The translations under genes and the position numbers were made by a program. From positions 62,001 through 126,000 of the IMG/VR virus record IMGVR_UViG_3300042391_000634: a DNA stretch of 64,000 nucleotides; one strand, written 5' to 3'. Positions 29,517 to 46,575 of this stretch are shown one piece after another. A model generated the notes under the pieces. It was not told where the DNA came from, did not search any database, and saw only the letters and a list, made by a program, of their open reading frames with translations. How positions within the stretch are numbered: position 1 is the first letter of the stretch; each line of letters begins with the position of its first letter.

Positions 29517-29518
29517 TG

Positions 29519-30511: not shown

Positions 30512-30623
30512 AATAATTTATTTAATATTATAATATAGGTTATTTTTTTATGAAAACAAAATTTTTTCAATAAAATAACTCATGAGTTTCATCAGTAGAC
30601 CAATTTATTAGTATTTATAGACA

Positions 30624-30706: not shown

Positions 30707-31354
30707 ATGGAAAAATTAAGAACATTAACAAACAACATTGGTGAAAAAATCTTTTTAGGTTTTTTATACTTTGCAATAACATGGGTAATATTAGCCGTCA
30801 TATTCGGTATATCCATGACATACTTGGAATTAGCAGGTAAAACGGAAACAACAAGAAACATAGTAAATTGGATTGATTGGAGAATTGATGGCACGTTTAA
30901 AAACTTACCTGAAAACATGTGGTATAATGCTGAAGACCATATTTGGGTTGAAAGTGTTACCAATGAGGTTAAGATGGGTAAATTGGCTGGAAATAGAAAT
31001 TTAGCTTTCGGTGTAAAAAATACATTGGAAGAATTCTTACAGGAAAAGGGTTATGATTTAACACCTTCAGCCCCATACAAATTAAAAGTTCAAATAATCT
31101 ATTTGGATGTTCTAACTACAAAAAAGAACATTTCTGTTTTTCATAAAAATGAAGAAGAAGTTGTCATTCGTATGAAAGGAACTTTATATAAGGATGGTAA
31201 AAAAGAAAAGGAAATAATGGTTGAAGAGTCATCTTCAGAAATATCAATGTCAACATTAATTGTAGATGAGGGTGGGAAATTTAATCAAACATCTTTAAGT
31301 AATGCTTTAAAAAAATCGGCGGATAAATTAATAACCAAATTATTTGATAAATAA
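30707..31354 (+). CDS. TM-anchored exported protein, partial paralog of the CsgG-like gene at 40979
   Basis: N-terminal TM. C-terminal KFNQTSLSNALKK parallels KFNQSTISIATKK in 40979..41698. Confidence 0.55.
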   Translation: MEKLRTLTNNIGEKIFLGFLYFAITWVILAVIFGISMTYLELAGKTETTRNIVNWIDWRIDGTFKNLPENMWYNAEDHIWVESVTNEVKMGKLAGNRNLAFGVKNTLEEFLQEKGYDLTPSAPYKLKVQIIYLDVLTTKKNISVFHKNEEEVVIRMKGTLYKDGKKEKEIMVEESSSEISMSTLIVDEGGKFNQTSLSNALKKSADKLITKLFDK

Positions 31355-31356
31355 TC

Positions 31357-33006
31357 ATGAAAAAACTATTAACGCTACTTGGAATACTAGTAATATCCAT
31401 AGCAACAAATGCACAATTAACGGTTAATCAATCAGTAACACCAACAACAGGATTAAAGGTTGGTGATACAGTTTCGGTAAAATACACAGTTGCAAGAGGT
31501 ACAACCACACCTCGTTATTTTTGGTTAAGATATCAATTTAACAATAAGGCACTTGCATATGTTTCAACAACGTTCTCACAAGGAACGTCGGTTCAAACAT
31601 TCTACACAGGTTGGTCGTCTTATAAGTTTACCTCAAGTGCCGCAAATAGTATTACAGCTAAAGATTTATATTCACAATATCTAATATCTCCATGGGGTTA
31701 TGCAACTAATGCAGATTGGAATGTTGGTCAATTAACAGTTCAAAGAACAGACGCTTCAATCAATGGAGATGTTGCAACTCAAAAATATGTAATTAAAGAT
31801 TTGGGAGCATATACCGACATCCACAAATTAGACTTATCATATTCAATTGACGCAACAAGTGCATACATTACACCAATTACGACTGACCCAGGTACAATGT
31901 CTTTAACAAATGTCGTGGGTAATACGTCTCAGTTCAAACTAAGAGTTTTATTCCCAACAGGATATGATATTACATCACATACGGTTGCTTTATTCCCAAT
32001 AAAAACAGATGGAACAATTGATTTTAATGTAACCCCTATTGCAACTAAAGTATTGGATGCAAGTGGTGAGGCGACATTTACAACAGAAGTTAAAGTGGGT
32101 GATAGTTTGGCGGTGTGGATGTATGGAGCAACAGGAAAAACTTTTATGAATAACATTATAACAGTATCGGATGCATATAAAGCATTTTTAGGTATTTCAC
32201 AAACGGATATTGCGGGTGTAAAAACTTATTTTACAAGACCACAATTACAAAAAAATATAGGACAAATTACAAAGAGTAAAGGTGTATTTAGTGAAAGTGA
32301 TTCATATTATATGTTTGCTTATGTAATGGGTATTGCTAATGTAAAAGATAGTGCATGGATTCCATTGAGTACAAATAGTGGTTTATTCAAATGGTATAGT
32401 GGTTTATTAAATCAAAGTTGGTTAGATGGTATACCTACTTACAAAACAAAAGTAACATCATCAAATCAATCGGTAGATATGGTATACGCATGGGGTGGTG
32501 ATTTGGATTGGTCTCATTCATCTGACCCCGATGTAATTGCATCTAGAATTGCCGCAGGAACTTACGCAAATTCAATTAATCCAAACGAACAAACTATAAA
32601 AACATTTTCAGTTCAATCAATGGCATACACACCTGTAATTGAAAAGGCAACATTAGGATTAGTTTCAACAATTTCTAACGGTAAAGTTGTTTTAACAGGA
32701 ACATTAACAAAAGACGGATTGGCGGGTTTAGAGGTAATCTTACAATATGACAATTCAAAATTAACATTTGAAAATATATCATTTGACGCTGGTCCAAATG
32801 TAACTAACTTCTCAACAAACGGAGATGGTAGATTAACATTCGGTTCTATGGATCAAATGAAAACAGGTAGAATTAAAATAGGAACACCTTACAAATTAAC
32901 TTTTACACCAAAAGAAACCATAACAAATACTGCAGGTTTATTCTATACAGTTTTAGCTGACGCGGTTGATGGAAACGGAAACAAGATTAATTTGATTGTT
33001 GAATAA
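31357..33006 (+). CDS. Secreted beta-rich protein with a dockerin-like segment and C-terminal cohesin-like domain
   Basis: Signal peptide ATNA-Q. ITVSDAYKAF and W.GDLDWSHS match paralog 33010. LAGLEVILQYDNSKLTF is a cohesin-like strand pattern. Confidence 0.55.
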   Translation: MKKLLTLLGILVISIATNAQLTVNQSVTPTTGLKVGDTVSVKYTVARGTTTPRYFWLRYQFNNKALAYVSTTFSQGTSVQTFYTGWSSYKFTSSAANSITAKDLYSQYLISPWGYATNADWNVGQLTVQRTDASINGDVATQKYVIKDLGAYTDIHKLDLSYSIDATSAYITPITTDPGTMSLTNVVGNTSQFKLRVLFPTGYDITSHTVALFPIKTDGTIDFNVTPIATKVLDASGEATFTTEVKVGDSLAVWMYGATGKTFMNNIITVSDAYKAFLGISQTDIAGVKTYFTRPQLQKNIGQITKSKGVFSESDSYYMFAYVMGIANVKDSAWIPLSTNSGLFKWYSGLLNQSWLDGIPTYKTKVTSSNQSVDMVYAWGGDLDWSHSSDPDVIASRIAAGTYANSINPNEQTIKTFSVQSMAYTPVIEKATLGLVSTISNGKVVLTGTLTKDGLAGLEVILQYDNSKLTFENISFDAGPNVTNFSTNGDGRLTFGSMDQMKTGRIKIGTPYKLTFTPKETITNTAGLFYTVLADAVDGNGNKINLIVE

Positions 33007-33009
33007 TTT

Positions 33010-35619
33010 ATGAAGAAACTATTAGTAGTATTATTTTTATTTATATCATTTTTAGGGTTTGGTCAGTCAGTAACGGCCCCAGACCCTAAATCATTTACTG
33101 TGAATACCACAGGACAAGACGCTAGTGGATTTTCATTAAGTGGATTTAGTGCAACATCTACTTTATTAGCTTCAATCAGTTTAGTTAATCCACCATCGGG
33201 AACTACATTCTATCTTAACACAACAACAGGTTTAATTGCCGCAAGTGGATTTACTTTAAGTGGTAATAAAACACGTTTAGTGGTAACTGGAACGATGGCA
33301 AGTATTAATACCGCATTAGCATCTCTAAAAATAAATACAGGAACAATAATAGGAGACATAAATATTTCAGTAGCAACAACTGTCAATCCCGTTGGGTTTT
33401 ATTATAATGGAGTAAACGGACATTTTTACAAACCGGTAACTACTGGTACAACATATACAAACGCAAGATCATCATCACTATTAACAACATTCAAAGGACA
33501 GACGGGTTATTTACTAACACTAACATCATCATCGGAAGATTTATTTATTCAAGCTAATGTACCACAATCAAATATATGGTTTGCGGCAACGGATGAAGTA
33601 ACTGATGGAACTTGGGTAATTGATGCGGGTCCTGAAAAGGGGACTGTGATGAAAACATCCAACGGACCAACTGCCGGAAACCGACCAGGTGTATATAATA
33701 ATTGGGCAAATGGTGAACCAAACGGATATAATCATAGTGAGGATTATGCGGTAACAAAATGGAATGGTAACCAATGGAATGATTTATCAAACAATTGGAG
33801 TAACCCATATGTAATTGAATATGGAACTTGGTCTAATCCCGATGATGCTACATTTACAGAATTTTATACCAATTCAGTAACACATTCAAACGGAGAAACT
33901 ATAAAAGCATTATTTGGATTTAAGTTTAATACTTCAATAGATAAAACAAAATTCTTAGCACAGATATTCAAAAGAAACGACACATATTCAAATTGGGCGG
34001 CGGCGGATGGTTATAAATCATTGAGTGGTTTGGGTAAAGTATTTCTTTCAAACCAAATAGATACTTCAAAGATTTATACAACTGGCATTCCATTAACAGC
34101 AGGAACATCCGATATGCAACAATTTAATGAATCGGATATTGGTAAGATATATAGAATAACAATAACAGGTACAACAGGTGGAGCAATATGGGGAACTGAT
34201 ATCTATACAAGTGATTCATATATTTCAGCTGCAGCGGTACATGCTGGTGTAATATCAAACGGACAAACAAAAGAAGTTTATATTAAAGTAGTGCAAGGAT
34301 TAAATGAATATATCGGATCAACTCGTAATGGAGTATCAACATCTGGTTATGGTGGTTGGGGGTTAAGTTATCAATTCGTATCAGCACCGGCATCATATAA
34401 AGCAACTATATCACCAGGAGGTGTTGAATGGTCTTATACAAATCCAAATGCAAGTTGGTTAAATGGTAATAGTAGATTGTTAATTGACATGAGACAAGTT
34501 GGAAGTATAGATCCAACTAAAATATCAAATGTAAAAATATTAGATGCATATGATGGACCGGTTACATACACATCTCATGATGCTAATGGTTGGGCAATAT
34601 ACACAGTTCCATCTCCATTAACAAAGGTAACTGACGGAACTTCGGCGTATAATCAATATATTAGAAATATGAATGGTTCAAATACCGAATATGCATTTGC
34701 ATGTGGTATTGGACTTACTCAACAAGGTGCGTTCAAACAACACAAAATGGAATTACAAGAATATGATAGTACACAATTAAAAACTTTATATAATAGTATT
34801 GTAACAGTATCAGATGTGTATTTGGCGTTTAAGGAATTGGCAAATGGCGGTATATTCGGAAATCAAAGTGGTAATGAATTTGGGTATGGTATTCAATATA
34901 AAAACGCAGATGTAAATGACGATGGTTTATTTAATGAAGCGGATTGTTTCAAATTATTACAAAACTTAACAGGTGTTCAAGATTTAGTTAGTAGTTACAC
35001 CTTAGATAATACAATACGTTTAATACCTGATTCAATTTATAATAAAATTGGTAAATCTACTTGGAAATCGTTTCAAAATTTTTCAGGAAAAACTTATAAT
35101 TTTAGTTTATTAGATAATGTAATAAGTTATAACTACGATTTGGCTGTTAGTTGGAAAGGTGACGTAAACTTATCTCATTCAGCAACTCCCCCGTCAAATA
35201 ATATTACAACGATGACAGTTAGAACATCAATGAGTACACCAATATCAACTGACATCAACGCATCTATTATGACCGAAGTAATTGGTGATAGTGTTTATGC
35301 TTACATCACATTTGACCCATTACAACAAAACGTGGTAGGAACTCAATTTCAATTAAACTATGATAATTCGGTCTTAAATTTTAAAGGAATACAATTTACC
35401 ACAAAAGGTTCACCTACCAACTATGCAACCAACAAGGGTAATTACATTAATTTAGGTTCGTTGGTAAGTGATGGTAGTACAAGTTTGGATAACACAACAA
35501 CATATAAGATTTCATTTTCGGCAAATACAAAATTGGATAACATATTGGGTTTAATTTCAATAGGTTCAACGGATGCGGTTAATAAAGATGGAAAATCATT
35601 AAAAATAAAAATAAATTAA
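33010..35619 (+). CDS. Secreted multidomain adhesin-like protein: C-type lectin, LCCL, dockerin-like and cohesin-like domains
   Basis: Signal LGFG-Q. NGHFY...YLLTLTS...W...NNWANGEPN...WNDL (CLECT); IWGTDIYTSDSYISAAAVHAGV...STRNGV (LCCL); NADVNDDGLFNEADC (dockerin/EF-loop); VGTQFQLNYDNSVL (cohesin-like). Confidence 0.7.
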   Translation: MKKLLVVLFLFISFLGFGQSVTAPDPKSFTVNTTGQDASGFSLSGFSATSTLLASISLVNPPSGTTFYLNTTTGLIAASGFTLSGNKTRLVVTGTMASINTALASLKINTGTIIGDINISVATTVNPVGFYYNGVNGHFYKPVTTGTTYTNARSSSLLTTFKGQTGYLLTLTSSSEDLFIQANVPQSNIWFAATDEVTDGTWVIDAGPEKGTVMKTSNGPTAGNRPGVYNNWANGEPNGYNHSEDYAVTKWNGNQWNDLSNNWSNPYVIEYGTWSNPDDATFTEFYTNSVTHSNGETIKALFGFKFNTSIDKTKFLAQIFKRNDTYSNWAAADGYKSLSGLGKVFLSNQIDTSKIYTTGIPLTAGTSDMQQFNESDIGKIYRITITGTTGGAIWGTDIYTSDSYISAAAVHAGVISNGQTKEVYIKVVQGLNEYIGSTRNGVSTSGYGGWGLSYQFVSAPASYKATISPGGVEWSYTNPNASWLNGNSRLLIDMRQVGSIDPTKISNVKILDAYDGPVTYTSHDANGWAIYTVPSPLTKVTDGTSAYNQYIRNMNGSNTEYAFACGIGLTQQGAFKQHKMELQEYDSTQLKTLYNSIVTVSDVYLAFKELANGGIFGNQSGNEFGYGIQYKNADVNDDGLFNEADCFKLLQNLTGVQDLVSSYTLDNTIRLIPDSIYNKIGKSTWKSFQNFSGKTYNFSLLDNVISYNYDLAVSWKGDVNLSHSATPPSNNITTMTVRTSMSTPISTDINASIMTEVIGDSVYAYITFDPLQQNVVGTQFQLNYDNSVLNFKGIQFTTKGSPTNYATNKGNYINLGSLVSDGSTSLDNTTTYKISFSANTKLDNILGLISIGSTDAVNKDGKSLKIKIN

Positions 35620-35624
35620 AAATT

Positions 35625-35906
35625 ATGGAATTTAATTTTGGATATGATGAAATGAAAAATTTTATCATTAAAAGTGGAAAATATAAAATTGTAAATGTTA
35701 AGTGTTTTAATCAAGTTCCTGGTAACTGGTATAATGGTTTCCGATATACGGAAGAAGAAGTATATGTAGAAGTGGCTTATCTAATAGATGATATTGAAAC
35801 TGAAAAATGGTTATTTAATGATGGATATAAACGAAAAGATATTCTGCAGGGGAGGATTGAATTAGCTTTTCACACAGAGATGAAAAATAAACTATTAAAT
35901 TTATAA
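35625..35906 (+). CDS. Hypothetical protein
   Basis: 93-aa ORF within the operon, no signal peptide. Confidence 0.7.
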   Translation: MEFNFGYDEMKNFIIKSGKYKIVNVKCFNQVPGNWYNGFRYTEEEVYVEVAYLIDDIETEKWLFNDGYKRKDILQGRIELAFHTEMKNKLLNL

Positions 35907-35911
35907 TATAA

Positions 35912-36799
35912 GTGAAAAAAATATTATTAATTATATCATTAGTTTTAATTGGTTTTGTTGCAAACGCACAAACGCCTGATACATTACAACTATCAGCAAA
36001 AGAATTATTTGGAGAAAGTGGTGATTGGAATAACTTAGGTATATTAGAGTCGTATATTGATTTTTCAAAAGATGTTCTTTCATCCTCAAATTTATCAGTA
36101 GGTGTAATTGGAAAACAAGTATCTACTACCTTAAATTTAGGATATAGTAAATCATCTAAAAATGGTAAATGGGGTCACTCATTCGCATCATCAATAAATC
36201 CTATATGGAATTATTATGGAGTAGGATATGGGTTCAGTAGAAATACGAATACAAGAACTACTACATTACAATCATTTTATTCAACCGATTTTGATTTTCA
36301 AAAAGATATTTCTCTATCATTTATTGATGTATTCAGAACTAAAAAGTTTGGAACATTTGGTTATAGTGTGATTGCGTCAAAATCGTTTTGGGGAAGTTAT
36401 CAAGGTCAATGGGAAGGAAAATATATAGTAGATGAAAATGGTGATTTTAAAGATTTAATATATCCACAAATGCCATCATCAAGTCAAATTAGTTATAGAG
36501 GTATGGCAATGTATACGTATACATTCAAAACAAAGAGAGTAAACATCTCACCACAAATATTTGCAATGAGTGATATCTACAAAGTATTCAAAGATGGGAC
36601 TGAATCGGATTTAGCATATGTGGATGATTTCAATTTGGACTTATATTATGGCACATCTATTGATTGGAAAATAACTAAAAAATTTGTATTGAATACTAAT
36701 GTTAGATATAACACAACTTGGGATAAATTAAGTGAATCGGTTGGGTATAAAAAGAGTAATCCAATTCTATTTATGATAGGAACAAACTTTCAATTTTAA
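35912..36799 (+). CDS. Putative outer-membrane beta-barrel protein
   Basis: Signal VANA-Q, alternating amphipathic strands, C-terminal FMIGTNFQF ending in Phe (BAM-type signal). Confidence 0.7.
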   Translation: MKKILLIISLVLIGFVANAQTPDTLQLSAKELFGESGDWNNLGILESYIDFSKDVLSSSNLSVGVIGKQVSTTLNLGYSKSSKNGKWGHSFASSINPIWNYYGVGYGFSRNTNTRTTTLQSFYSTDFDFQKDISLSFIDVFRTKKFGTFGYSVIASKSFWGSYQGQWEGKYIVDENGDFKDLIYPQMPSSSQISYRGMAMYTYTFKTKRVNISPQIFAMSDIYKVFKDGTESDLAYVDDFNLDLYYGTSIDWKITKKFVLNTNVRYNTTWDKLSESVGYKKSNPILFMIGTNFQF

Positions 36800-36802
36800 A
36801 AT

Positions 36803-37156
36803 ATGAAACGTATTAAAATTATATTATTGTGTTGTTTGGTTTTTATATTATCATGTAAAAAAACGATTCCGTTTACACCTGTGTCACCGACAAATGTGGA
36901 ATTTTTCTCCTTATCTGAAAATAAGGTAAAAAACGGGGATGTTATTAATATTAATTTAACTACAGTAGGAACATATACTTTAACAATGATTGACACGGTT
37001 CAAAACCAAGTAGTATCAAGGGAAAGATTTACTGGTAAAGTAGGATTAAACTCTCTTAAAATATTTACTAATACCTTACCGACAAAAAACCTAAGTGTCG
37101 TATTAAAGGATCAAAATAATAATCAAATAGGTAAAACAAGAATAATTATAAATTAA
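36803..37156 (+). CDS. Lipoprotein with a small Ig/T9SS-CTD-like domain
   Basis: Lipobox ILSC-KK; GTYTLTMID...GLNSLKIFTNTLP...KIIIN-like end. Confidence 0.6.
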   Translation: MKRIKIILLCCLVFILSCKKTIPFTPVSPTNVEFFSLSENKVKNGDVININLTTVGTYTLTMIDTVQNQVVSRERFTGKVGLNSLKIFTNTLPTKNLSVVLKDQNNNQIGKTRIIIN

Positions 37157-37168
37157 AAAAGACAAAAA

Positions 37169-37537
37169 ATGAAAAAAGTATCTCTCGTACTCTTTGGATT
37201 AATCTTCCTTGTTGGTTGTAGAAAAGTAGACATACCAATGCAACCACAAGTGATTAGCGACAACCTTAAAATCTCAAGTTCAGTGGGATTAAAATTAGAA
37301 ACTTCATTTATAACAAATGAAGTTGCGATGAACATAAAAAGTGATGTTGCACAAACCGTAACCGTTAAGATTTTTGATATTTCCAACAGAGTGGTATCAA
37401 AATCAACAAGTGAGGTTAAGGTTGGTGATAACATTTTAAGGGTGTATACATCCGCTTTACCGTCTTCATCATATAGGATTGCATTATATGATGTTGCGGG
37501 TAATATGTTAGGAATTACTGATTTTAATAAAATTTAA
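37169..37537 (+). CDS. Lipoprotein with a T9SS-CTD-like domain (paralog of the previous gene)
   Basis: Lipobox LVGC-RK; VTVKIFDISNRVV...GDNILRVYTSALPSSSYRIAL resembles the Por secretion C-terminal sorting domain. Confidence 0.6.
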   Translation: MKKVSLVLFGLIFLVGCRKVDIPMQPQVISDNLKISSSVGLKLETSFITNEVAMNIKSDVAQTVTVKIFDISNRVVSKSTSEVKVGDNILRVYTSALPSSSYRIALYDVAGNMLGITDFNKI

Positions 37538-37569
37538 GATAATTATATAAAGACAAAAAACACAAAATT

Positions 37570-37884
37570 ATGGCAGAAGAACAAGAAAAATCAGAAAGTA
37601 CCGGTGGTTCAATTAAGAACATAATTATCGGTTTAGTAAGCACTATCACATTAGGTGTGGGTGGTTGGTTTACAACAAAATTAACAGGTGGTGACGAAAA
37701 AGAGGCTCCCGTTCAACAAGCGGCACCTGTAATCAACATTACCAATTCACAAACTCAACAAGCGAGTGGTGGTAAAACTGTAATCATTAACAAAGGTGGA
37801 GACGGTAGTGCTAAACCTGTACCAGCACCAAAACCTAAGAAAAAAGAAGGTGATGAGTTTAAAGAAGAGGCACCTAAGTGGTAA
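37570..37884 (+). CDS. Single-TM protein with a Pro/Lys-rich tail
   Basis: IIIGLVSTITLGVGGWF TM; tail KPVPAPKPKKK. Confidence 0.7.
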   Translation: MAEEQEKSESTGGSIKNIIIGLVSTITLGVGGWFTTKLTGGDEKEAPVQQAAPVINITNSQTQQASGGKTVIINKGGDGSAKPVPAPKPKKKEGDEFKEEAPKW

Positions 37885-37909
37885 TTTAACATAAAAAAAT
37901 TTATATAAA

Positions 37910-38530
37910 ATGGCAGACAAACAACCACCAAGTGGTTTTAAGGATTTATTAAGTAATATGATGGCCAGACGATGGTACATCACAGCATTGGTATTGGGTG
38001 GATTTATGTTAATTATAGGGGGTATGTTCTTCGCTATATTAAGTAAATCGGAAATAGCAGGAGAATGGAAAGAACTTTTATTATTGTTATTGGGTGCGTT
38101 CATCGGTAGTTATGGTAAAATCATTGACTATTGGTTTAGTGATACTGATAAGGATAAGATGTTAGTTCAGAAAATGGATGAGGAGGATGGTACAACATTA
38201 AGTAATACTGCGGATTTACCTGTAACTCCACCAAATAATACTCCATTAATACCTGATGCGTTTGTACAAGCAGCAAAAAATGCACATGAAATCAATTTAA
38301 TAGAAGCCAACAAACCAAAAGAAGAAATTAAAGTTGAATCACCAAAACCAACACCGAGAACTGGTGTTGAAGTAGATGAAGATGGTGATGGAACTATGGA
38401 TGGTATTGATTTTGACGGTGACGGAAAAATTGACATATATTTCGCACACAGACAATGTGAACACGTATGGGGTGATTTAGATGGTGATGGTACTGAAGAG
38501 TGTTTAAAATGTGGTAAAATAAAAGATTAA
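37910..38530 (+). CDS. Two-TM protein with DxDGDG Ca-binding loops and a Cys/His C-terminus
   Basis: Two TMs; DEDGDG, DFDGDG, DLDGDG; CEH...CLKCG. Confidence 0.7.
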   Translation: MADKQPPSGFKDLLSNMMARRWYITALVLGGFMLIIGGMFFAILSKSEIAGEWKELLLLLLGAFIGSYGKIIDYWFSDTDKDKMLVQKMDEEDGTTLSNTADLPVTPPNNTPLIPDAFVQAAKNAHEINLIEANKPKEEIKVESPKPTPRTGVEVDEDGDGTMDGIDFDGDGKIDIYFAHRQCEHVWGDLDGDGTEECLKCGKIKD

Positions 38531-38586
38531 AATGTAGAAATACATACGGAAGGATAAAATAAACAAAAGACAAAAAATAAAAAACT

Positions 38587-38835
38587 ATGACATTTAAACA
38601 ATGGGTTATTGAACTTTTCAAAGATGAAAGAGGTTCTATTTCAGTTAAACCAGTTATTGCATTTATAGGAGCATTATTCCTATGTGTTACTATGGTTTTA
38701 AATTCGTTCTCTCACGCGGATTTTGCTCCATCACCTGAATTGGTGAATGCGGTGATGTTAATCACGGGAATCGGAATGGGTGCAGATACTTTGGATAAAT
38801 TCTCTCACAAAAAGAAAGAAGAAACAGAAGGTTAA
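38587..38835 (+). CDS. Small two-TM protein, holin-like
   Basis: 82 aa, two TMs, charged C-terminus KKKEETEG. Function is inference. Confidence 0.5.
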   Translation: MTFKQWVIELFKDERGSISVKPVIAFIGALFLCVTMVLNSFSHADFAPSPELVNAVMLITGIGMGADTLDKFSHKKKEETEG

Positions 38836-38841
38836 TACGAA

Positions 38842-38866
38842 AGGGAGTTAAAAACTCCCTTTTTTT
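38842..38866 (+). terminator. Rho-independent terminator
   Basis: AGGGAGTT-aaa-AACTCCCT then TTTTTT, followed by TATTTATA at 38870. Confidence 0.85.
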
Positions 38867-38887
38867 ATGTATTTATATTAAAAGAAT

Positions 38888-39961
38888 ATGATAAAAGAAC
38901 AAATTCCTACAGGTTGGCAAGGTGGTTTTCCCTCTGAAAATCAAAATCAAATGCTATATCCTACTACAGATTTAACTTCATTACCTATGTTAGGTAATAT
39001 GGATAACATTAATTTACTACAAAGACAATGGGGTGTTAAATGGCCAATGTTTAGTTGGAATACCCTAAATGGGGAAAAAGACCCAAAACGTTGTTATGTA
39101 CAATTTGCTCCTTATATTTCAAGAATAGGATATACCAATGAAGGTAGAATTTATTCCATAATCTGTCCTCAACAAGGGATGTGGATTGGAGATGAGATTT
39201 GTATCAATGTGGAAGTAACAGTTACGGGACAAAGAGGATGGGTTAATGAAGACACAAAGGAAATTGCTGCGGATATGATGGTTGAGGGAAAAATTTGGTT
39301 AACACCAGGTGAAAATCAAGGTGGTCTATTAAGAGCAATTTGGCCATTATTAAAATACAGTTCTCGTAAGTATCCTATCAACAAAGAAAATGCTATTCGT
39401 GTTTTAACACATCTACCAGGAAATCCTAAAGAACCTATATTTCAACTCGGAAAGGGTTTATCACCAAGATTTAAGAATCCTGATTTTGCCATAAAGGAAG
39501 AAGCATATAGTACAGGACATATCAATGTAGAAATAGGAGGAATGGTAACAACAAGTGATCACAAATTAGATAAGTTTAATCAATACTTTTTAAATCTTTT
39601 TAACTTAGGTACGGGTAATATGTTACAAAAGGGTAATGTATTATCGTGGAATTTATTTTTTGATTCACCTGAATTAGTTTCAGTTCCTGAATGGCAAAAT
39701 CACGCTGACTATTGGCGTACTTCCATAGGTGCACATCACGGTTCACCAGGTGGTGAGGGAACAAGTCCAAGATATTTTGATGGAACCTATTTTGATACCA
39801 AAAATTTCGCCATTAAAGAGGTCATAAAAGATATTTTAGAACACGTTGTAAAAAACTCCACATTGAGAAAGGGTTTAATATTACTTGTAGAATATTGTCC
39901 TAAAACAATATTTGATATATTCTTAAAGAAAGGTGATCAATCTAAAACAAAAACACAATAA
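38888..39961 (+). CDS. Hypothetical protein, 357 aa
   Basis: Long ORF after a late motif; no recognised family. Confidence 0.8.
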   Translation: MIKEQIPTGWQGGFPSENQNQMLYPTTDLTSLPMLGNMDNINLLQRQWGVKWPMFSWNTLNGEKDPKRCYVQFAPYISRIGYTNEGRIYSIICPQQGMWIGDEICINVEVTVTGQRGWVNEDTKEIAADMMVEGKIWLTPGENQGGLLRAIWPLLKYSSRKYPINKENAIRVLTHLPGNPKEPIFQLGKGLSPRFKNPDFAIKEEAYSTGHINVEIGGMVTTSDHKLDKFNQYFLNLFNLGTGNMLQKGNVLSWNLFFDSPELVSVPEWQNHADYWRTSIGAHHGSPGGEGTSPRYFDGTYFDTKNFAIKEVIKDILEHVVKNSTLRKGLILLVEYCPKTIFDIFLKKGDQSKTKTQ

Positions 39962-39964
39962 ACT

Positions 39965-40201
39965 ATGGAAGAAGAATTAATTGGGTCAATTAAATTATTT
40001 GCAGGGGGCTACGCTCCTCAAGGATATGTAGAATGCAACGGACAATTATTAAACATAAGGGAAAATGAGGCGTTATATGTATTACTGCAAGATAGATACG
40101 GAGCAACACCAAATTTATTTGCAGTACCTAAAATGGAACCACCTATGGATGGTATGAAATACATAATAGCCACTCGTGGTATATGGCCAGCAAGACAGTA
40201 A
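39965..40201 (+). CDS. Stand-alone phage tail-collar domain protein
   Basis: IGSIKLFAGGYAPQGYVECNGQLL...ALYVLL...YG. Confidence 0.85.
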   Translation: MEEELIGSIKLFAGGYAPQGYVECNGQLLNIRENEALYVLLQDRYGATPNLFAVPKMEPPMDGMKYIIATRGIWPARQ

Positions 40202-40225
40202 TATTATAACAAAAACAAATACACA

Positions 40226-40969
40226 ATGACAAAAAACGAAATACTATACAATGTCGGTTTAACCGAGAAAGTATATTCAGAACAAAAAGACATTGATTTT
40301 AAAGCACAAAGATTAAAATTAATTAAATGGATTGACGATAAAAAAACAGATACACAAGGATTTGTTGCCACAAAGGATAAATCTATCTATATCGTTTGGA
40401 GAGGAAGTTCTTCTAAAAAGGATTTCCAAAACGACGCATCAATTGATAAAGTTCCATTTGTTCAAGATGGTGAAAAAGTTCACATTGGATTTAAATCATC
40501 TTGGGACGCTGTTAAAGACGAAACTTATAAATCATTTGAAAAAGCATTATCCACATTAGGTGGAGAAGGCGAAGTTGATAATATTATTGTTTGTGGACAC
40601 AGTTTGGGTGCTGCAGTTTCTACCTTGTGTGCGTATGAGATATATTCAATTTATAAATCAAATAAGATTATATGTTGTACTATCGGTAGTCCAAGAGTTG
40701 GTAATAAAGTATTCAAACAAAACTTTGATAAATCATCAATTGAATCATTGAGAATCGTTCATAATAACGACGTGGTAACACATTCTCCATATATTGGATA
40801 CTATCACGTCAATCAGATGTTACGTATCGATAGTGAGGGTAATATTAAGAAGTTCATGATTGATTGGGAACGTGCTTGGAATTATTTTAAATCTATGGTA
40901 ACGGGTAAGAACATTAAAGACCACATGACCGATGGATATATCAGTTCATTAAATAAATGGAATCCCTAA
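40226..40969 (+). CDS. Class 3 lipase (alpha/beta hydrolase)
   Basis: IYIVWRGS, VHIGF, CGHSLGAA nucleophile elbow, IGSPRVGN, NDVV, DH. Confidence 0.92.
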   Translation: MTKNEILYNVGLTEKVYSEQKDIDFKAQRLKLIKWIDDKKTDTQGFVATKDKSIYIVWRGSSSKKDFQNDASIDKVPFVQDGEKVHIGFKSSWDAVKDETYKSFEKALSTLGGEGEVDNIIVCGHSLGAAVSTLCAYEIYSIYKSNKIICCTIGSPRVGNKVFKQNFDKSSIESLRIVHNNDVVTHSPYIGYYHVNQMLRIDSEGNIKKFMIDWERAWNYFKSMVTGKNIKDHMTDGYISSLNKWNP

Positions 40970-40978
40970 AAAAAATAT

Positions 40979-41698
40979 ATGAAAAAATTATTAATATTAT
41001 TAAGCGTTTGTTTAGTAGGTCTTGTTGCAAATAGTCAAACAATAGGTTCAACAAAAACCGAACAATATAAAGCAGATTTTGAAAAGAAAAGAGACATAAG
41101 TGCGTACATGGACTACGATGGTCCTCAAATACCCATCCAAATACTAAAGGCGGGTATTTCTGATGAGATGTACGAGATGTATCCTGAATTAAAAGAAAAA
41201 CGTGTTGGTTTGGGTGTTGCTAACATTTCAATGGAATACCTTGAAAACTTAAACAGATTCAAATTTACCGAGGATAAGACAGAAATTAAGAATAGGATGG
41301 TAAAACAATTTCAAGCATCTGCGGCAGGTATTTCCGAGAATAAATTAGATGGACGTGGTAAAATCAATTTGGCGAAGTATTTTGTTACGATTGAGTGTTA
41401 TGACTACTCGGTGTCAGAAGATGAAACTATCAACCTAAAAGACGGTATTAAAGACAATATGGTGACTCGTATAGGTCTTCAGGTTAGATTTACTGACGCT
41501 GAGACAGGTGTCTTGTTTGGTGGGTCAGGTTTAGGTGAGGCAACAACAAAAAGAGAACTAACTCTTTTATCCGATGCAACAGTTGACCCAATTAAATTTA
41601 ATCAATCAACAATTAGTATTGCAACGAAGAAAGCTTTAGACATTGCATGCGCTAATATCCTTGATAGAATGATTAAAAAAGGTATATTCACGAAATAA
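40979..41698 (+). CDS. Secreted CsgG/HfaB-like protein
   Basis: Signal VANS-Q; GLGVANI...NRFKFTE...AKYFVTIECYDYS...IGLQVRFTDAETG follows the CsgG-family layout. Confidence 0.55.
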   Translation: MKKLLILLSVCLVGLVANSQTIGSTKTEQYKADFEKKRDISAYMDYDGPQIPIQILKAGISDEMYEMYPELKEKRVGLGVANISMEYLENLNRFKFTEDKTEIKNRMVKQFQASAAGISENKLDGRGKINLAKYFVTIECYDYSVSEDETINLKDGIKDNMVTRIGLQVRFTDAETGVLFGGSGLGEATTKRELTLLSDATVDPIKFNQSTISIATKKALDIACANILDRMIKKGIFTK

Positions 41699-41931
41699 TG
41701 AAATACGAAGTAGTGGACGTTCCACAAAATAATCCTTGCGAAAATTGTACACCATGTATGAGATTAAAATTAATGGAAATGGGGTTTATACATGGGCAAG
41801 AAATTGAAATAAGTGAAAAGAAACTTGGGCTTTATTTAGTAAATATTATATCCGATGGAGGACAGATAGATTCGACTGTAGCACTCAGACAAGAAGAATT
41901 AGATAGAATATGTTTAAAAGGGGTTTTATAA
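41698..41931 (+). CDS. FeoA (SH3-like) domain protein
   Basis: RLKLMEMGFIHGQEIEI...VALRQEE. Confidence 0.75.
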   Translation: MKYEVVDVPQNNPCENCTPCMRLKLMEMGFIHGQEIEISEKKLGLYLVNIISDGGQIDSTVALRQEELDRICLKGVL

Positions 41932-41941
41932 CCCCTTTTTT
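41916..41941 (+). terminator. Rho-independent terminator
   Basis: AAAAGGGGTT-ttat-AACCCCTTTTT, followed by TATTTATA at 41944. Confidence 0.8.
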
Positions 41942-41955
41942 AATATTTATATTAT

Positions 41956-42135
41956 ATGAAAAAGTTTAAGAGAGTTCACGACGATAAAGTTTTCTTTGGT
42001 GTGTGCAGTGGTTTAAGTCACCGTACCAATGTTGACCCATTAGTTTGGAGGTTGTTGTTCTTTTTTTTAATATTTTCACCAGTCCCAATAATAACCGGTT
42101 ATTTACTAACCACAATTTTAACTGAAACAGTATGA
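41956..42135 (+). CDS. PspC-domain membrane protein, 59 aa (not in the ORF track)
   Basis: MKKFKRVHDDKVFFGVCSGLSHRTNVDPLVWRLLFFFL... has the PspC GVC.GL...DP..R signature. Confidence 0.8.
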   Translation: MKKFKRVHDDKVFFGVCSGLSHRTNVDPLVWRLLFFFLIFSPVPIITGYLLTTILTETV

Positions 42136-42977
42136 AAAAGGTTTTATTAGTTACAGGATTAACAATATTGTTAATTTTAATCTGTGCAATAATGTTGAAG
42201 GCTCAAGTATCAACTTGGAGACAAACTGGTGGAAGTGTTCCGGCATCATCACAAACATCACAATCAACTCAAACAAGAGTTCAACCATCTATACCACAAC
42301 AACAAAATGTGAGTAGTTGGAGAAATAATCAACCGCAACAACCTAATCCAGACCCACGTGGTAGAGTACGTGTTCAAAATTGGAATAGAAATAATCAATT
42401 TGGTTACTATTGGGGTAATTGGGGATGGTATCAACCAATGCCTTACATTTGGTATGATGATTTTGGATGGAGACAAAGAAGTATAATTCATATCTATGAA
42501 AATGGAAAAAGAGATACAATCCCATCAAAACCTGTATTGTTTTCAGTTGGACTTGGTCATACTACTAATAAACAGGCAAATTGGTGGGGAATGATCGGTA
42601 GAGATAAATTATATTTTATTTTAGATTATGTAATGACTTATGATATTGACCATAACCAATACTATCCATATGGTAAAATTAATAATGTAGATTTTCCACT
42701 CGATCCAAATGATTTTATAAAAGAAGGAACATTATATTTTGGTATGGGTAAAAAAGTTAATGGATTTGGTATTCATACTATGATAGGATTTGGTAACGAA
42801 GTAATTAGATATCAAGGTAAAGATGACTTGGGAGGTATTTCATTTCCAAAATCAAAATCAAATTTTACAACATTTAAAATTGGATTAATAAAAGAATTTA
42901 AAATTATTACAATAAAATTAGATGCTGACCCAATAAGAGGATATACACAAATAGGAATAGGCTTGAATAACAAATAA
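42132..42977 (+). CDS. Secreted protein: low-complexity Q/N/P/W N-terminus plus probable OM beta-barrel
   Basis: Signal MLKA-Q; amphipathic strands ending YTQIGIGLNNK. Confidence 0.6.
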   Translation: MKKVLLVTGLTILLILICAIMLKAQVSTWRQTGGSVPASSQTSQSTQTRVQPSIPQQQNVSSWRNNQPQQPNPDPRGRVRVQNWNRNNQFGYYWGNWGWYQPMPYIWYDDFGWRQRSIIHIYENGKRDTIPSKPVLFSVGLGHTTNKQANWWGMIGRDKLYFILDYVMTYDIDHNQYYPYGKINNVDFPLDPNDFIKEGTLYFGMGKKVNGFGIHTMIGFGNEVIRYQGKDDLGGISFPKSKSNFTTFKIGLIKEFKIITIKLDADPIRGYTQIGIGLNNK

Positions 42978-44557
42978 TGAAGAAATATATTATCTCTCTC
43001 CTAATATTATTTTTTTGTGGTGAGTCGTTTGGTCAAACCATAACACAAACATATATCGATCCGTGTGATCAAAAGGTATATGTGGTTATTATTCCATTCG
43101 GACAAAATCAAACTATTGCAGTTATTAGAGGTAAATCTAAAATTGTAACATTATCGGATATCAGTAGTGGTGCATTTCAAACATGGGTCAATAGTGTATT
43201 TGCAACTCCATGTCCACAAAACGAAACAATTAGATTAGCACAAGAAGCCGCTGCGAGGGCGGCTGCGGATGCTGCGGCAAGGGCTGCTGCTGATGCTGCG
43301 GCAAAAGCTGCGGCGGATGCTGCCGCAAAGGCCGCGTCAGATGCTGCGGCAAAAGCTGCTGCGGATGCTGCAGCATCAAGTGCATCATCTGCGGCAAGTA
43401 ATTCGGCATCTACCGCAGCTTCATCGGCAGCAAGTTCAGCGGCAAGTTCTGCCGCGAGTGGTGCCGCTGGTGGAGCTGCAAGTTCTGCTGCGGCAAGTGC
43501 ATCAACACCACCACCAATAACAGCACCACCTCCACCTGCTGCGGCACCTCCACCAGCAAGTAGTTCATCATCACCACCTCCTGCAAGTGGTGGTAGTTCA
43601 TCATCGAGTAGTGGTGGAAGTTCTTCTTCATCGGAAACTAAAACAGAAACTAAAACTGAAGCAAAAACAGAAAGTAAAACTGAGGAAACTAAAACAGAAA
43701 GTAAAACAGAAGAAAAGAAAACAGAAAGTAAAACAGAAGAAAAGAAAGAAGAATCAAAAACTGAAGAAAAGAAAGAAGAATCAAAAAAGGAAGAAACTAA
43801 AAAAGAGGAGGAGAAGAAAGAAGAAAGTAAAAAAGAAGAAGAGAAAAAGAAAGAGGAAGAGAAAAAGAAAAAAGAGGAAGAAAAGAAAAAACAAGCAATA
43901 ACAAATCCATTACTTTTATCTTCTGATTTAACAACAGCACAAACGGTGGATAATAGATATTTGGTGCAAATTTCTATGGGTGTAAGTAAATCATCTATGG
44001 CTGGCGATGAAAGCTTTAGTGGGGGATTGACAATTAATAGTGATTTAAGTTCAATTGTAACAACTGGTGGATACACTAAAATGGCAATGACAGAAGATGG
44101 TAATTTAGATGCCATACATTCGTATGGAACCGCGTTCGCATATCTTGCAGGAAATTACATGAATTTATTAGGTTATACTTGGATTAAACCAACACCTAAA
44201 AAAGGAACATTTGGTTATAATGTTGGTGTTATTAATTTATTTCTTAAAAACGATAAGGGTGGTTTTGATTATAATATGGCATCGTCAGCAATTGCATTTT
44301 GGACTAAACCATATGTTTATTCTAAAAAACTAACAGTATCACCACAGGTGTTCACAATGTTCTCACCTATCTCTTGGAATAGTGTTACAGGAGTATCGAC
44401 GGTTAACAGACATATGGGATTTTTATTAGGTAGTTCTTTTGATTATAAATTAACCAAAAGATTTGGATTTAGTTTTAACTACAAAATGAGTGGTAACACA
44501 AAACCTGGTTCTCCGTTCTTAAGTAATTTCTTGATAGGTAGTAGAATGATGTTGTAA
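42977..44557 (+). CDS. Secreted protein: long Ala/Ser/Pro/Lys-Glu linker plus probable OM beta-barrel
   Basis: Signal ESFG-Q; (AAADAAAK)n, PPPA and (ESKTEEKK)n tracts; C-terminal alternating strands ending FLIGSRMML. Confidence 0.65.
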   Translation: MKKYIISLLILFFCGESFGQTITQTYIDPCDQKVYVVIIPFGQNQTIAVIRGKSKIVTLSDISSGAFQTWVNSVFATPCPQNETIRLAQEAAARAAADAAARAAADAAAKAAADAAAKAASDAAAKAAADAAASSASSAASNSASTAASSAASSAASSAASGAAGGAASSAAASASTPPPITAPPPPAAAPPPASSSSSPPPASGGSSSSSSGGSSSSSETKTETKTEAKTESKTEETKTESKTEEKKTESKTEEKKEESKTEEKKEESKKEETKKEEEKKEESKKEEEKKKEEEKKKKEEEKKKQAITNPLLLSSDLTTAQTVDNRYLVQISMGVSKSSMAGDESFSGGLTINSDLSSIVTTGGYTKMAMTEDGNLDAIHSYGTAFAYLAGNYMNLLGYTWIKPTPKKGTFGYNVGVINLFLKNDKGGFDYNMASSAIAFWTKPYVYSKKLTVSPQVFTMFSPISWNSVTGVSTVNRHMGFLLGSSFDYKLTKRFGFSFNYKMSGNTKPGSPFLSNFLIGSRMML

Positions 44558-44590
44558 AAAAAATCCCCGAAGTAGAAACCTCGAGGATGT

Positions 44591-45035: not shown

Positions 45036-45515
45036 TTATTTTTTACTACGGTCCCATTTAGCCTTTCTTAACTCAGGGGATATTAAATGACTCTCATCTA
45101 TTGTATGTTCAATTTTAACGTTTATACAGGTTTGGGGTAAACTACAATTTTTTAAATAATTGTTAATATATCCCATCATATTAGCACTACCAATAGGGTT
45201 TGCCGAATGAATATAAACCTGGGGTAAAGGTATTTTTTCATTCATACTTTCAGCAACCAAATACCTACAACAATCCATACCAGTTTTTTCTTCTATGTTG
45301 TTATAATCCAACATATAATTATTTTTTACATTTGTATAATATTCTATCATGGCACCTTCACCTAAATCATGATCTAAAGATATTACATCAAAATTACCTA
45401 AACTATGTAATTTAATTGCAGCCACAAATTCATCGTAATTACGGGCAATAACCCAATCCTCAGCATTAGGGGTTCTAACGTCATCGAGATATAATCTCTT
45501 TTTTTCAATTTTCAT
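45036..45515 (-). CDS. Cyclic-phosphate-processing receiver-like domain protein
   Basis: LYLDDVRTP, SLDHDLG, TGMDC..YL and HSANPIG; adjacent to the RNA ligase. Confidence 0.75.
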   Translation of the reverse strand: MKIEKKRLYLDDVRTPNAEDWVIARNYDEFVAAIKLHSLGNFDVISLDHDLGEGAMIEYYTNVKNNYMLDYNNIEEKTGMDCCRYLVAESMNEKIPLPQVYIHSANPIGSANMMGYINNYLKNCSLPQTCINVKIEHTIDESHLISPELRKAKWDRSKK

Positions 45516-46575
45516 CTTTCTTAAAAGGTTTTTCGTATTTAGGTTTCATTATTCTCCATATAATATGTTCATATGGTTTTCCGTCCCACATGGCAAACAT
45601 AATTGGTCTATAATAAGATTCTACATCACATTTTTCTAAATGTAATGCAAAGTCTTTTTTTGATGGTGTAACTTCTTTATCGTTATATTTTCCATATTTA
45701 AAATAGTCCACAACCTTACCACAATGATTTGATATATTATACATACCATATTCAAAAGAACTTACTTGTTGTTTAACCCATTTATAAAATTCATCGGGAA
45801 CCCTATCTAAAAATTCATCCATAGGTTTTCCTTCTTTCATTAATTCCCAAATATCTTTTGATGAAAAATTTGTTAAAATTTTGTGAAGACGTTTATATTC
45901 TTCTCCTTTGATTTTCATACGAAAACCATTCTTAAATTTAATTACATATCCCTCTCTATCTTTACTAATTTCTTCTTTAAGTAAGTCGTATCCTTCACCC
46001 CATGTTTTATATGTTGTTACAACCTCAAAGCCCGAGTCTTGTGTCCAAAATAAACTACTATCAGGTATTTCTTCACCTGTTTCAGTATGAATCGCACCAA
46101 GAACAACTAATTTTTCTTCACCTTTATAATCAACAACAATTCTATTTTCAGGATAAATAATTTCAAATAAATATGTATTGTCTTTTCTCCATGCACTGAT
46201 GTCATGTCTATCAAGAATTTCTTTTCCTTTAATTGATTGTGGTGATGTGAAGGATCCGCGTGTAGCCATTATCCATTCATTTTCATAATTAAAAAGAATA
46301 CCTAAAGATCCATCCATCTTTTCATAGACAACGTAATTTTCATTAGGAATATCTTCTGGTTTATGTTCTTCGTAATTAAAAAATTTCTTAAATGGTCTTG
46401 CAACAATATCACCTTTTGAATTGGTAACTAATCCACGGCATTGTAAAGTAATATCATCCCACAATCTTTCGTATTGAACTTTAGGAGAATAATTCCATAT
46501 AGTCAAATCTTTAGTAGGATGTGTTTGTTTATGTAACAAACCATCATTATGATATTTCTCTAAAATTTCTAACAT
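45505..46575 (-). CDS. T4 Rnl1-type RNA ligase
   Basis: YEKMDGSLG (motif I), FEII (III), EGYVIKF (IV), KIK (V). Start at MLEIL, coupled to the upstream stop. Confidence 0.9.
   Translation of the reverse strand: MLEILEKYHNDGLLHKQTHPTKDLTIWNYSPKVQYERLWDDITLQCRGLVTNSKGDIVARPFKKFFNYEEHKPEDIPNENYVVYEKMDGSLGILFNYENEWIMATRGSFTSPQSIKGKEILDRHDISAWRKDNTYLFEIIYPENRIVVDYKGEEKLVVLGAIHTETGEEIPDSSLFWTQDSGFEVVTTYKTWGEGYDLLKEEISKDREGYVIKFKNGFRMKIKGEEYKRLHKILTNFSSKDIWELMKEGKPMDEFLDRVPDEFYKWVKQQVSSFEYGMYNISNHCGKVVDYFKYGKYNDKEVTPSKKDFALHLEKCDVESYYRPIMFAMWDGKPYEHIIWRIMKPKYEKPFKKDEN

Follow-up and report, generated by a model that had tools for sequence, protein, structure and literature searches.

Single exported proteins are known from several bacteriophages, among them Llp of T5, Imm and Sp of T4, and Lom and Bor of lambda, and the exported envelope proteins of phages are known mostly as such single, small exclusion or moron proteins. 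Another example has been described in the prophages of P. gingivalis, where secreted proteins that follow the Q-rule of Bacteroidetes signal peptides occur scattered, their function being unknown (PMC10367356). Here we describe a 14-kb module of 18 genes (g1-g18, positions 30707-44557) in a stretch of 64,000 nucleotides, referred to as the window, that spans positions 62,001 to 126,000 of IMG/VR virus record IMGVR_UViG_3300042391_000634. The module is like the proteins just named in being phage-encoded, in carrying export signals of the host type and in plausibly changing what the cell surface binds, yet it differs from the single small proteins of T5, T4 and lambda in having a core of at least nine genes and in belonging to lytic large or jumbo phages. 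We read it, with even chances of being right, as a conserved envelope module of large Bacteroidota phages, in which a platform built on g14 and g18 would put the secreted proteins g2 and g3 on the surface of the infected cell and thereby alter what that cell binds. No description of a conserved multi-gene phage envelope module of this kind was found in the literature.

The window encodes TerL, a portal, a prohead protease, a Lon-like protease, an RNA ligase and glycosyltransferases and is thus phage DNA, and it is matched at 100% by an IMG/VR contig of 335,630 bp, which makes the phage a jumbo phage. Its portal is of a distant T4 type, with Microcystis phage Mel-JY01 (41%) and Flavobacterium phage vB_FspM_immuto (36%; immuto from here on) as the best matches, and megablast of GenBank phages with 30-45 kb of the window gave no match. 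Judged by sequence, this is probably a large freshwater phage with a Flavobacterium-like member of the Bacteroidota as its host.

All 18 open reading frames (ORFs) of the module lie on the + strand, where they overlap or are spaced by 0-56 nt, and strand switches bound the block on both sides. They fall into three units (g1-g10, g11-g15 and g16-g18), as in the original prediction, made from the sequence of the window, of about 20 co-oriented genes in three units, of which only the count needs correction. The core genes, together with g5, g10 and g17, are as follows.

30707-31354, + strand: g1, inner-membrane-anchored protein with a YajG (Lipoprotein_16)-like periplasmic domain; transmembrane (TM) segment at residues 15-33
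31357-33006, + strand: g2, secreted protein of 549 aa with a Q-rule signal peptide and a C-terminal cohesin-like sandwich
33010-35619, + strand: g3, secreted protein of 869 aa with C-type lectin, LCCL, dockerin-like loop and C-terminal cohesin-like domain (Pfam)
35912-36799, + strand: g5, predicted outer-membrane beta-barrel with a GTG start, ending in FQF; barrel-only paralogue of the g18 C-terminus
36803-37156, + strand: g6, small lipoprotein with a lipobox and a beta-sandwich like a C-terminal domain (CTD) or DUF3244; paralogue of g7
37169-37537, + strand: g7, small lipoprotein with a lipobox; paralogue of g6
37570-37884, + strand: g8, core bitopic inner-membrane protein; TM segment at residues 18-36, Pro/Ala/Lys-rich tail ending in Trp
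37910-38530, + strand: g9, core inner-membrane protein; two hydrophobic segments and a C-terminal His/Cys zinc-ribbon-like motif
38587-38835, + strand: g10, 82-aa protein with two TM segments and a charged C-terminus; holin-like in size and topology only
40979-41698, + strand: g14, secreted CsgG-superfamily protein (by fold and transitive Pfam matches), the most conserved core gene
42132-42977, + strand: g17, secreted protein of variable presence; Q/P/W/R-rich N-terminal region and beta-rich C-terminal domain
42977-44557, + strand: g18, core gene; signal peptide, N-domain, linker and modelled C-terminal 12-stranded-barrel domain

Searches of IMG/VR recovered 79 loci with g3 as the query and 19 with g11, and tblastn combined with ORF-level blastp found the core g1-g2-g3-g6-g7-g8-g9-g14-g18 in constant order in about 80 contigs; the co-occurrence across related phages that had been proposed as a check on the original prediction is thus observed. 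The full order, seen in nearly all of these loci and always on one strand, is g1-g2-g3-(g4)-(g5)-g6-g7-g8-g9-(g10)-(small g1-like ORF)-g14-(g15, g16)-(g17)-g18, with g5 and g10 each present in about half of the relatives and g17 variable. Median identity across the loci ranges from 84% for g14, the highest, to 45% for g6, and the core order is held down to 41-55% identity. In many relatives, and in phage immuto, g18 directly follows g14 or overlaps it. Two slots, one from g10 to g14 and the other from g14 to g18, are occupied in the relatives by further exported cargo, which includes several lipoproteins as well as proteins with signal peptides, 826 and 1,007 aa in length (examples are L029:15837-18860, L089:13602-16082 and L014:17878-19080). 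The N-terminus of the 1,007-aa cargo protein resembles, by eye, a TonB-dependent/SusC-type receptor.

Among 50,697 GenBank phages searched by tblastn, g14 (54-55%) together with the lectin domain of g3 was found in the four records of immuto only. The host of this phage is Flavobacterium sp. LMO8 from the Baltic Sea, and its mini-module reads as follows.

gp013: signal peptide and Lectin_C (3e-15)
gp014: signal peptide
gp015: signal peptide, Cohesin (5.9e-9, 36.7 bits) and a type A sorting domain of the type IX secretion system (T9SS; 2.4e-8, 34.6 bits), both above cutoff
gp016: g8 homologue
gp017: g14 homologue
gp018: g18 homologue, overlapping gp017
gp019: g1-like protein with a signal peptide

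By these domains gp015 is predicted to be displayed on the cell surface, and the T9SS tag on this cohesin protein is the strongest feature that points to surface display. Directly upstream of the mini-module (L101, NC_055915, positions 6936-7514) lies a gene for a secreted non-specific endonuclease, with a signal peptide and Endonuclease_NS (1e-25). A contig binned with Sediminibacterium carries g1, a g3-like gene, g8, g14 and g18, so that a minimal core of g1, a cohesin protein, g8, g14 and g18 is common to it and immuto. When the contigs of bacterial metagenome-assembled genomes (MAGs) were scanned for g14 with a profile of close sequences, three of the four that carry it were binned with Bacteroidota. 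In the Microcystis phage with the closest portal the module was absent by tblastn, which indicates that the module follows the type of host envelope and not the phage lineage, and points to a function specific to that envelope.

In Bacteroidetes, a Gln directly after the cleavage site of the signal peptide constitutes the Q-rule (PMC5837995), and the exported products of the module conform to it. Export was called by a heuristic screen of hydrophobicity and charge, combined with family alignments, and 13 of the 18 products carry an export signal, in line with the expectation that most would have a signal peptide, a lipobox or a TM helix. Signals of the signal-peptidase-I type are found on g2, g3, g5, g14, g17 and g18, and in all six the predicted cleavage exposes Gln (ATNA/Q, GFG/Q, ANA/Q, ANS/Q, LKA/Q and SFG/Q, with the slash at the cleavage site), which is invariant across the family alignments. 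This agreement with the Q-rule supports both real export and a host among the Bacteroidota. The remaining signals are lipoboxes (g6, g7) and TM anchors (g1, g8, g9, g10, g16), and 8 of the approximately 10 ORFs with signal peptides in the window fall within these 14 kb.

The E. coli curli channel CsgG belongs to a fold that it has in common with LpoB, PelC and LptE, and g14 is, to judge from its model, a CsgG-superfamily protein, as had been proposed for one gene of the module. A profile search of 1.8 billion representatives yielded 295 relatives of g14, whose family comprises about 6,400 protein clusters. The AlphaFold2 (AF2) model built on the resulting alignment (pLDDT 83) was compared with the PDB by Foldseek, where the top 21 matches are all CsgG chains (4uv3/4uv2; E down to 3e-7, prob 1.0, TM-score 0.38-0.51), followed in rank by GNA1162, PelC, FlgT and LptE. 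The structural neighbours of g14 in the ESM Atlas are CsgG clusters, and the best viral fold match in BFVD is one uncultured-phage protein that is named CsgG. Distant members of the family carry the same signal in sequence, in that 13 of 34 diverse full-length members match Pfam CsgG (PF03783, best 1.9e-17) and six match LpoB. Sequence-profile searches of the PDB with the g14, g1 and g5/g18 families returned no CsgG, YajG or barrel match, and the CsgG identity of g14 came only through fold comparison and transitive Pfam matches. Nothing could be learned from the genes around two distant CsgG-like homologues in bacteria. As in the PelC-PelB and LptE-LptD systems, the gene for the CsgG-fold protein adjoins a barrel gene, here g18.

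In type Va autotransporters and FapF, a signal peptide and a passenger or N-domain precede a 12-stranded barrel, and g18 has a similar arrangement, which is kept in 17 homologues: a signal peptide, a domain of about 70 aa with two Cys, a linker of about 230 aa rich in Ala, Ser, Pro, KTE and EK, and the barrel. The C-terminal 215 residues of g18 are homologous to g5 (hhalign 96%, E 2.6e-9), for which the AF2 model is an all-beta barrel. Foldseek matches this model to NanC, EspP, NalP and FapF, and also to EstA and BrkA (E ~1e-7, TM-score 0.44-0.57, with 0.5-0.57 for NalP, EspP, EstA and FapF), and its Atlas neighbours are autotransporter beta-domains (TM-score 0.64-0.66). On this basis g5 and the C-terminus of g18 are modelled as 12-stranded barrels of the autotransporter/FapF/NanC type. 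They differ from these families in that the 'passenger' of g18 consists of a 70-aa knob and a low-complexity linker, and no Autotransporter or FapF hidden Markov model (HMM) of Pfam matches g5 or g18. A role of g5 as a PorP/SprF partner was considered and set aside, there being no HMM support at E<=0.1-1. The third of the three barrels originally suspected is g17, which is possibly a small outer-membrane barrel: Q25 is invariant in its alignment and some members end in F, and the OMP_b-brl leads in the Atlas are weak (0.87-0.88). Of that trio, then, g5 and g18 are backed by models and homology and g17 by a weak lead.

The secreted proteins g2 and g3 resemble the cohesin-dockerin scaffolds and T9SS cargo of Bacteroidota, in that both end in cohesin-like sandwiches and g3 has one dockerin-like calcium loop; immuto gp015, with its signal peptide, Cohesin and type A CTD above the Pfam cutoffs, has the make-up of T9SS cargo. 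The two are paralogous over their C-terminal 290-300 residues or so (blastp E 2.5e-15), and g3 matches LCCL (2e-14) and Lectin_C (2.6e-5, above cutoff) in Pfam and cochlin LCCL and C-type lectins in the PDB, so that the paralogy and the lectin and LCCL domains of the original prediction stand. A profile of g2/g3 matches a scaffoldin cohesin of the PDB at E 0.029 and immuto gp015 at an hhalign probability of 38%. The C-termini of g2 and g3 were also considered as type B T9SS domains, for which there is no HMM support at E<=0.1-1. Among the relatives, g3 occurs in size classes of about 870, 760 and 640 aa, which all keep the C-terminal 400 residues; residues 355-462 (LCCL) are missing from the 760 class, and the 640 class begins with an N-terminal part unlike that of the others. 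Variation at the N-terminus and constancy at the C-terminus are typical of adhesins anchored by their C-terminus, and tail fibres show the opposite.

At the start of the module, g1 falls just short of the Pfam cutoff for Lipoprotein_16 (24.8 bits against 25), which 13 of 16 family members match. It had been taken for a TM-anchored CsgG paralogue; this assignment was dropped, since g1 has only two short motifs in common with g14 (hhalign 30% over 28 columns) and YajG is the better likeness. In 18 other loci the first 76 aa or so of g1 (30707-30940) are a separate TM ORF of about 75 aa directly upstream of g14 (for example L022:14946-15170 and L054:15205-15435), and where the main g1 was recovered from such loci it is short and has a Q-rule signal peptide in all but one. 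On sequence comparison g1 of the window is thus a fusion of a small TM protein with a YajG-like domain. Through this fusion the opening gene of the module contains what is elsewhere a neighbour of g14, a link between the module's two ends.

The small lipoproteins g6 and g7 are paralogues (E 1.5e-11) with a lipobox Cys that is invariant in 28 homologues. Matches of the family to DUF3244 (14 of 28) and to the T9SS sorting domain Por_Secre_tail (10 of 28) are sub-threshold, and for g7 they amount to DUF3244 at 8e-4, Por_Secre_tail at 0.023 and TIGR04183 at 0.005; the two T9SS-CTD-like lipoproteins proposed at the outset are hence lipoproteins by their lipobox and CTD-like below threshold. Homologues of g8 are found in immuto (gp016, E 1e-7) and in the MAG contigs L102 and L103. 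In g9, residues 52-94, comprising the second hydrophobic segment and a run of acidic residues, do not vary at all (100% identity) among 14 homologues whose identity elsewhere is 62-84%, a constancy that suggests a tightly constrained interaction with a partner. The residues H180, C183, H185, C198 and C201 of g9 (H-x2-C-x-H...C-x2-C) are also invariant.

Each of the three units is headed by the motif TATTTATA, as originally proposed, and the boundaries within the module have terminator hairpins in front of it.

30612-30619, + strand: TATTTATA, promoter-like, heading unit 1, 87 nt before g1
38839-38877, + strand: boundary of units 1 and 2, with a terminator hairpin (38839-38863) followed by TATTTATA (38870-38877), 10 nt before g11
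41916-41951, + strand: boundary of units 2 and 3, with a terminator hairpin (41916-41939) followed by TATTTATA (41944-41951), 4 nt before g16
44563-44588, - strand: terminator hairpin of the genes that converge on the end of the module from the opposite strand

A fourth copy within the module, at 33038, lies in the region of g3 that encodes the signal peptide. As a count, the 25 copies in the window do not depart significantly from the 16.4 expected, and their placement is non-random: about 19 of the 25 stand 4-35 nt upstream of ORF starts, for example at 16353, 16807, 55750, 57581, 60889 and 61651, and several lie directly 3' of a GC-rich hairpin plus T-run. The head genes are included, with distances to the start of 5 nt for TerL, 4 nt for the portal, 16 nt for the protease and 27 nt for the putative capsid gene. 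The motif recurs in the relatives, where an exact copy is found within the 120 nt upstream of g1 in 23 of 63 distinct relatives, of g11 in 8 of 13, of g14 in 13 of 59, of g16 in 8 of 9 (in all eight at 4 nt from the start) and of g17 in 7 of 26, with a background of 2.3% per 120 nt; none was found before g2, g3, g5, g6, g8-g10, g13 or g18. An apparent signal before g7 proved to be an artefact of conserved Tyr-Leu-Tyr codons in g6. For comparison with a T4-type late unit, TATTTATA stands before structural genes (TerL, portal, protease and capsid) and before g1, g11 and g16 alike; read on the other strand it gives the T4 late box TATAAATA, of which it is the reverse complement, and hence it is a different box. 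Its nearness to start codons implies leaderless or near-leaderless mRNAs. Late expression of the module may be read from a single feature, namely that TATTTATA is common to the module and the head genes.

If these features are put together, the module would be transcribed from the motif that also heads the head genes, and its products would be exported by the host Sec pathway by means of Q-rule signal peptides and lipoboxes. The proteins g1, g8 and g9 would be placed in the inner membrane, g14 and the domain of g1, with their CsgG/LptE fold, in the periplasm or at the inner face of the outer membrane along with the lipoproteins g6 and g7, and the barrels g18 and g5, perhaps with g17, in the outer membrane. 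By analogy with LptE-LptD or PelC-PelB, g14 would pair with the barrel of g18, a pairing that agrees with the way g14 and g18 adjoin or overlap in many relatives, and g1, g8 and g9 would link this pair to the inner membrane to give an envelope-spanning platform. Together with the host Sec, Lol and BAM machineries, and probably T9SS, the platform would export g2 and g3 or anchor them at the surface of the infected cell. The system is accordingly not 'self-contained', as had been claimed, since it would need Sec, the signal peptidases, Lol and BAM of the host, and probably its T9SS. The purpose would be an altered binding by the surface, either as masking of receptors (against superinfecting phage, or against the loss of progeny on infected cells and debris) or as sticking to neighbours. 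The coating of the cell that had been proposed at first, for exclusion, defence against grazers or adhesion, is likewise conjectural. That the products go to the inner membrane, the periplasm and the outer membrane is supported by the signals described above, and some probably reach the surface; the assembly of the platform, its surface exposure, its timing and its purpose we infer. The more specific proposal, in which a ring of CsgG fold, an autotransporter/FapF-like barrel and inner-membrane partners, with the host T9SS, install lectin/cohesin adhesins late on the infected-cell surface, is put forward tentatively, as somewhat doubtful in its full detail.

Several observations weigh against a surface platform of this kind. 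Taken alone, g14 has no match at E<=0.1 in Pfam or NCBIfam and none in PHROG or among PDB sequences, and its best TM-score is only about 0.5. The lipobox (a GC consensus) is present in distant bacterial homologues only, the phage homologues having a signal of the signal-peptidase-I type with Gln and no conserved Cys, and family searches of the 18 ORFs found no csgE, csgF, csgA or csgB partner. The model of g14 has long strands at residues 134-152, 156-173 and 179-194 with a charged tip at 143-160, so that g14 is at most a candidate membrane pore; the transmembrane barrel of CsgG is nonameric, with 36 strands formed by two hairpins. Unlike CsgG, g14 is encoded by a lytic phage. Confidence in the g5 model is moderate (pLDDT 64). 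With 24.2 bits for g3 and 23.6 for g2 against a Pfam cutoff of 24.1, the cohesin matches are borderline, and the dockerin-like part of the original prediction shrinks to a single loop, DVNDDGxFNExD, seen by eye, which occurs in g3 homologues only and is lost in g2; Pfam finds no dockerin in either protein, and the duplicated calcium-binding loop-helix is missing. For the T9SS CTD (PF18962/TIGR04183), the only match in the window is that of g7, with 15.4-16.7 bits against cutoffs of 27 and 23. Further differences from cohesin-dockerin scaffolds and T9SS cargo are the absence of cellulosomal enzymes and the fact that the CTD-like g6 and g7 are lipoproteins. The motif TATTTATA stands as close as 4-5 nt to start codons, and its role as a promoter, and hence the late timing, is something that we infer; freshwater metatranscriptome contigs cover 5-13% of the sampled words of 38500-44500, which is no proof of transcription. 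Finally, in 13 of 94 loci a co-oriented homologue of the phage endolysin stands right beside the module, and this adjacency, with the holin-like small TM proteins, g10 included, keeps a role in lysis or egress in play as a rival or an added function. By its defining features the module is outside the curli, autotransporter, cellulosome and T9SS-cargo families, whose folds it borrows.

In addition to the core, the units contain genes that are scattered or rare among the relatives.

35625-35906, + strand: g4, small cytoplasmic ORF without a signal, in about nine loci only
38888-39961, + strand: g11, cytoplasmic protein of 357 aa without a signal
39965-40201, + strand: g12, 78-aa protein with a phage tail collar domain (Pfam Collar 6e-14; weak PHROG tail-fibre matches)
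40226-40969, + strand: g13, class 3 lipase without a signal peptide (Lipase_3 2.6e-28; PHROG esterase/lipase 3e-12)
41698-41931, + strand: g15, FeoA-domain protein (Pfam FeoA 4e-6), in 19 loci
41956-42135, + strand: g16, 59-aa membrane protein with a PspC domain (Pfam PspC 1.9e-14), in 13 loci

No family or PDB match was found for g11. The genes g11-g13 are present in a minority of loci and are sited elsewhere in other contigs, and on the comparison of loci g4, g11-g13, g15 and g16 count as accessory insertions that most relatives lack and that stand outside the machine. The PspC, FeoA and lipase domains of the original prediction are therefore confirmed by Pfam as domains and not as parts of the machine, and the collar domain of g12 had been overlooked. 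A PHROG search of the 18 ORFs gave the tail-fibre-like g12 and the esterase g13 only, with no structural match for g2 or g3, and an NCBIfam search of the same ORFs gave nothing significant.

Holin-endolysin-spanin cassettes are among the closest known systems, and in the first alternative the module would be a lysis or egress apparatus, with g8-g10 as holin-, antiholin- or spanin-like proteins and g6, g7, g14 and g18 as outer-membrane parts of a spanin equivalent that breaches the outer membrane of Bacteroidota; the lipase would help, and the secreted proteins would tune the timing of lysis as do the periplasmic RI and Sp in T4. The endolysin of the window is the following gene.

241-1083, + strand: GH19-type endolysin with an N-terminal peptidoglycan-binding domain (PDB 9eoi, 2.4e-32), 30 kb from the module

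In the relatives where its homologue adjoins the module, g1 follows at a distance of 75-470 nt in ten loci, and in two others the homologue comes 339 nt after g18; such proximity speaks for a lytic role, as does the presence of small TM proteins of holin-like size and topology, namely g10, which matches holin_phiLC3 weakly (E 0.14, NCBIfam), and a 99-aa protein in the slots of 28 loci. As in spanin pairs, the genes for small lipoproteins adjoin that for a bitopic inner-membrane protein, the linker of g18 could bridge the periplasm, and a signal-less lipase is present in some loci. Against this, the endolysin is distant in the window and about 6 kb from the mini-module in immuto, where it is annotated and unrelated genes lie between, and no holin or spanin family rises above noise in PHROG or NCBIfam. 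The candidate assignment of g9 as a T holin of the T4 type was dropped because of its two hydrophobic segments and zinc-ribbon-like C-terminus, which are unlike that holin. Most of the coding capacity of the module goes to lectin/cohesin proteins and barrels, unlike in lysis cassettes, and some 1,400 residues of modular lectin/LCCL/cohesin protein have no obvious role in lysis from within. We regard a lysis apparatus as unlikely, at about one chance in five, and as a rival that deserves to be kept in sight.

A second alternative, a little less likely still, is a loose island of independent exported morons, serving exclusion, defence or nutrient uptake, that have gathered at a permissive, co-expressed site and build no common structure. 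The scattered Q-rule proteins of the P. gingivalis prophages, cited at the outset, provide a precedent for it, and it would account for the gain and loss of g5, g10 and g17 among relatives and for slot cargo that differs from locus to locus (lipoproteins, large signal-peptide proteins, glycosyltransferase-like and phosphoesterase-like genes, g11-g13). It does not sit well with a core order that persists in about 80 contigs at identities as low as those given above, with the five-gene core of immuto, whose portal is only 36% identical, with the overlap of g14 and g18 in many relatives, with the g1 fusion that joins a g14-side gene to the first gene of the module, or with paralogous pairs that are kept together.

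Very improbable is a third alternative, that g2, g3 and g12 are virion-associated adhesins (tail-fibre or decoration proteins) whose assembly is helped by their neighbours: the lectin domains of jumbo phages have usually been interpreted as adhesins of the virion (PMC7824862), a tail collar domain is present in g12, TATTTATA is common to the head genes and g3 is modular like a receptor-binding protein, whereas the conserved Q-rule signal peptides on g2, g3 and their neighbours would take these proteins out of the cytoplasm, where virions are assembled, the variable end of g3 is its N-terminus, the reverse of tail fibres, PHROG gives no structural match, the cohesin protein of immuto is T9SS-tagged and g12 lies in an accessory insertion.

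Beyond the module, the window contains an RNA cluster (24274-29590) just upstream.

24274-24679, - strand: tmRNA, predicted tag ATSTVAVA
26548-26949, - strand: GOLLD RNA, 290 bits
28452-29590, - strand: four tRNAs (Glu, Ser, Met, Thr)

Just downstream of the module, a 70-aa lipoprotein-like ORF (LTLTAC; 47303-47515, - strand) is flanked by the RNA ligase (PHROG 562, 5e-72) and the Lon-like ATP-dependent protease (PHROG 4871, 4e-243), the region being 45505-49717 (- strand). A run of glycosyltransferase-like genes and neighbours at 8561-14946 (+ strand; PHROG 24687 at 1e-86, PHROG 2170) is a possible island for the modification of surface glycans in the same phage. An ORF of 211 aa with a Q-rule signal peptide is located at 5053-5688 (+ strand), 25 kb from the module; in L014 and L019 its homologue follows g18 at a distance of no more than about 0.5 kb, and it may belong to the functional set of the module.

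The envelope module interpreted here as a surface platform has a core of at least nine genes (within 14 kb in the window) that combines folds typical of secretion systems with large lectin proteins and is conserved throughout a highly abundant freshwater phage group, and in this it differs from the single small proteins by which exported phage envelope proteins are mostly known. A cultured representative exists in Flavobacterium phage immuto on strain LMO8. If the surface complex is real, the module would give a handle on how phages use the Q-rule Sec pathway and T9SS, and infected Bacteroidota cells would carry a surface specified by the virus, a virus-built structure that reprograms what the dying cell binds, be it other phages, neighbouring hosts or grazers, with a bearing on superinfection, the loss of progeny on debris, aggregation and grazing in lakes.

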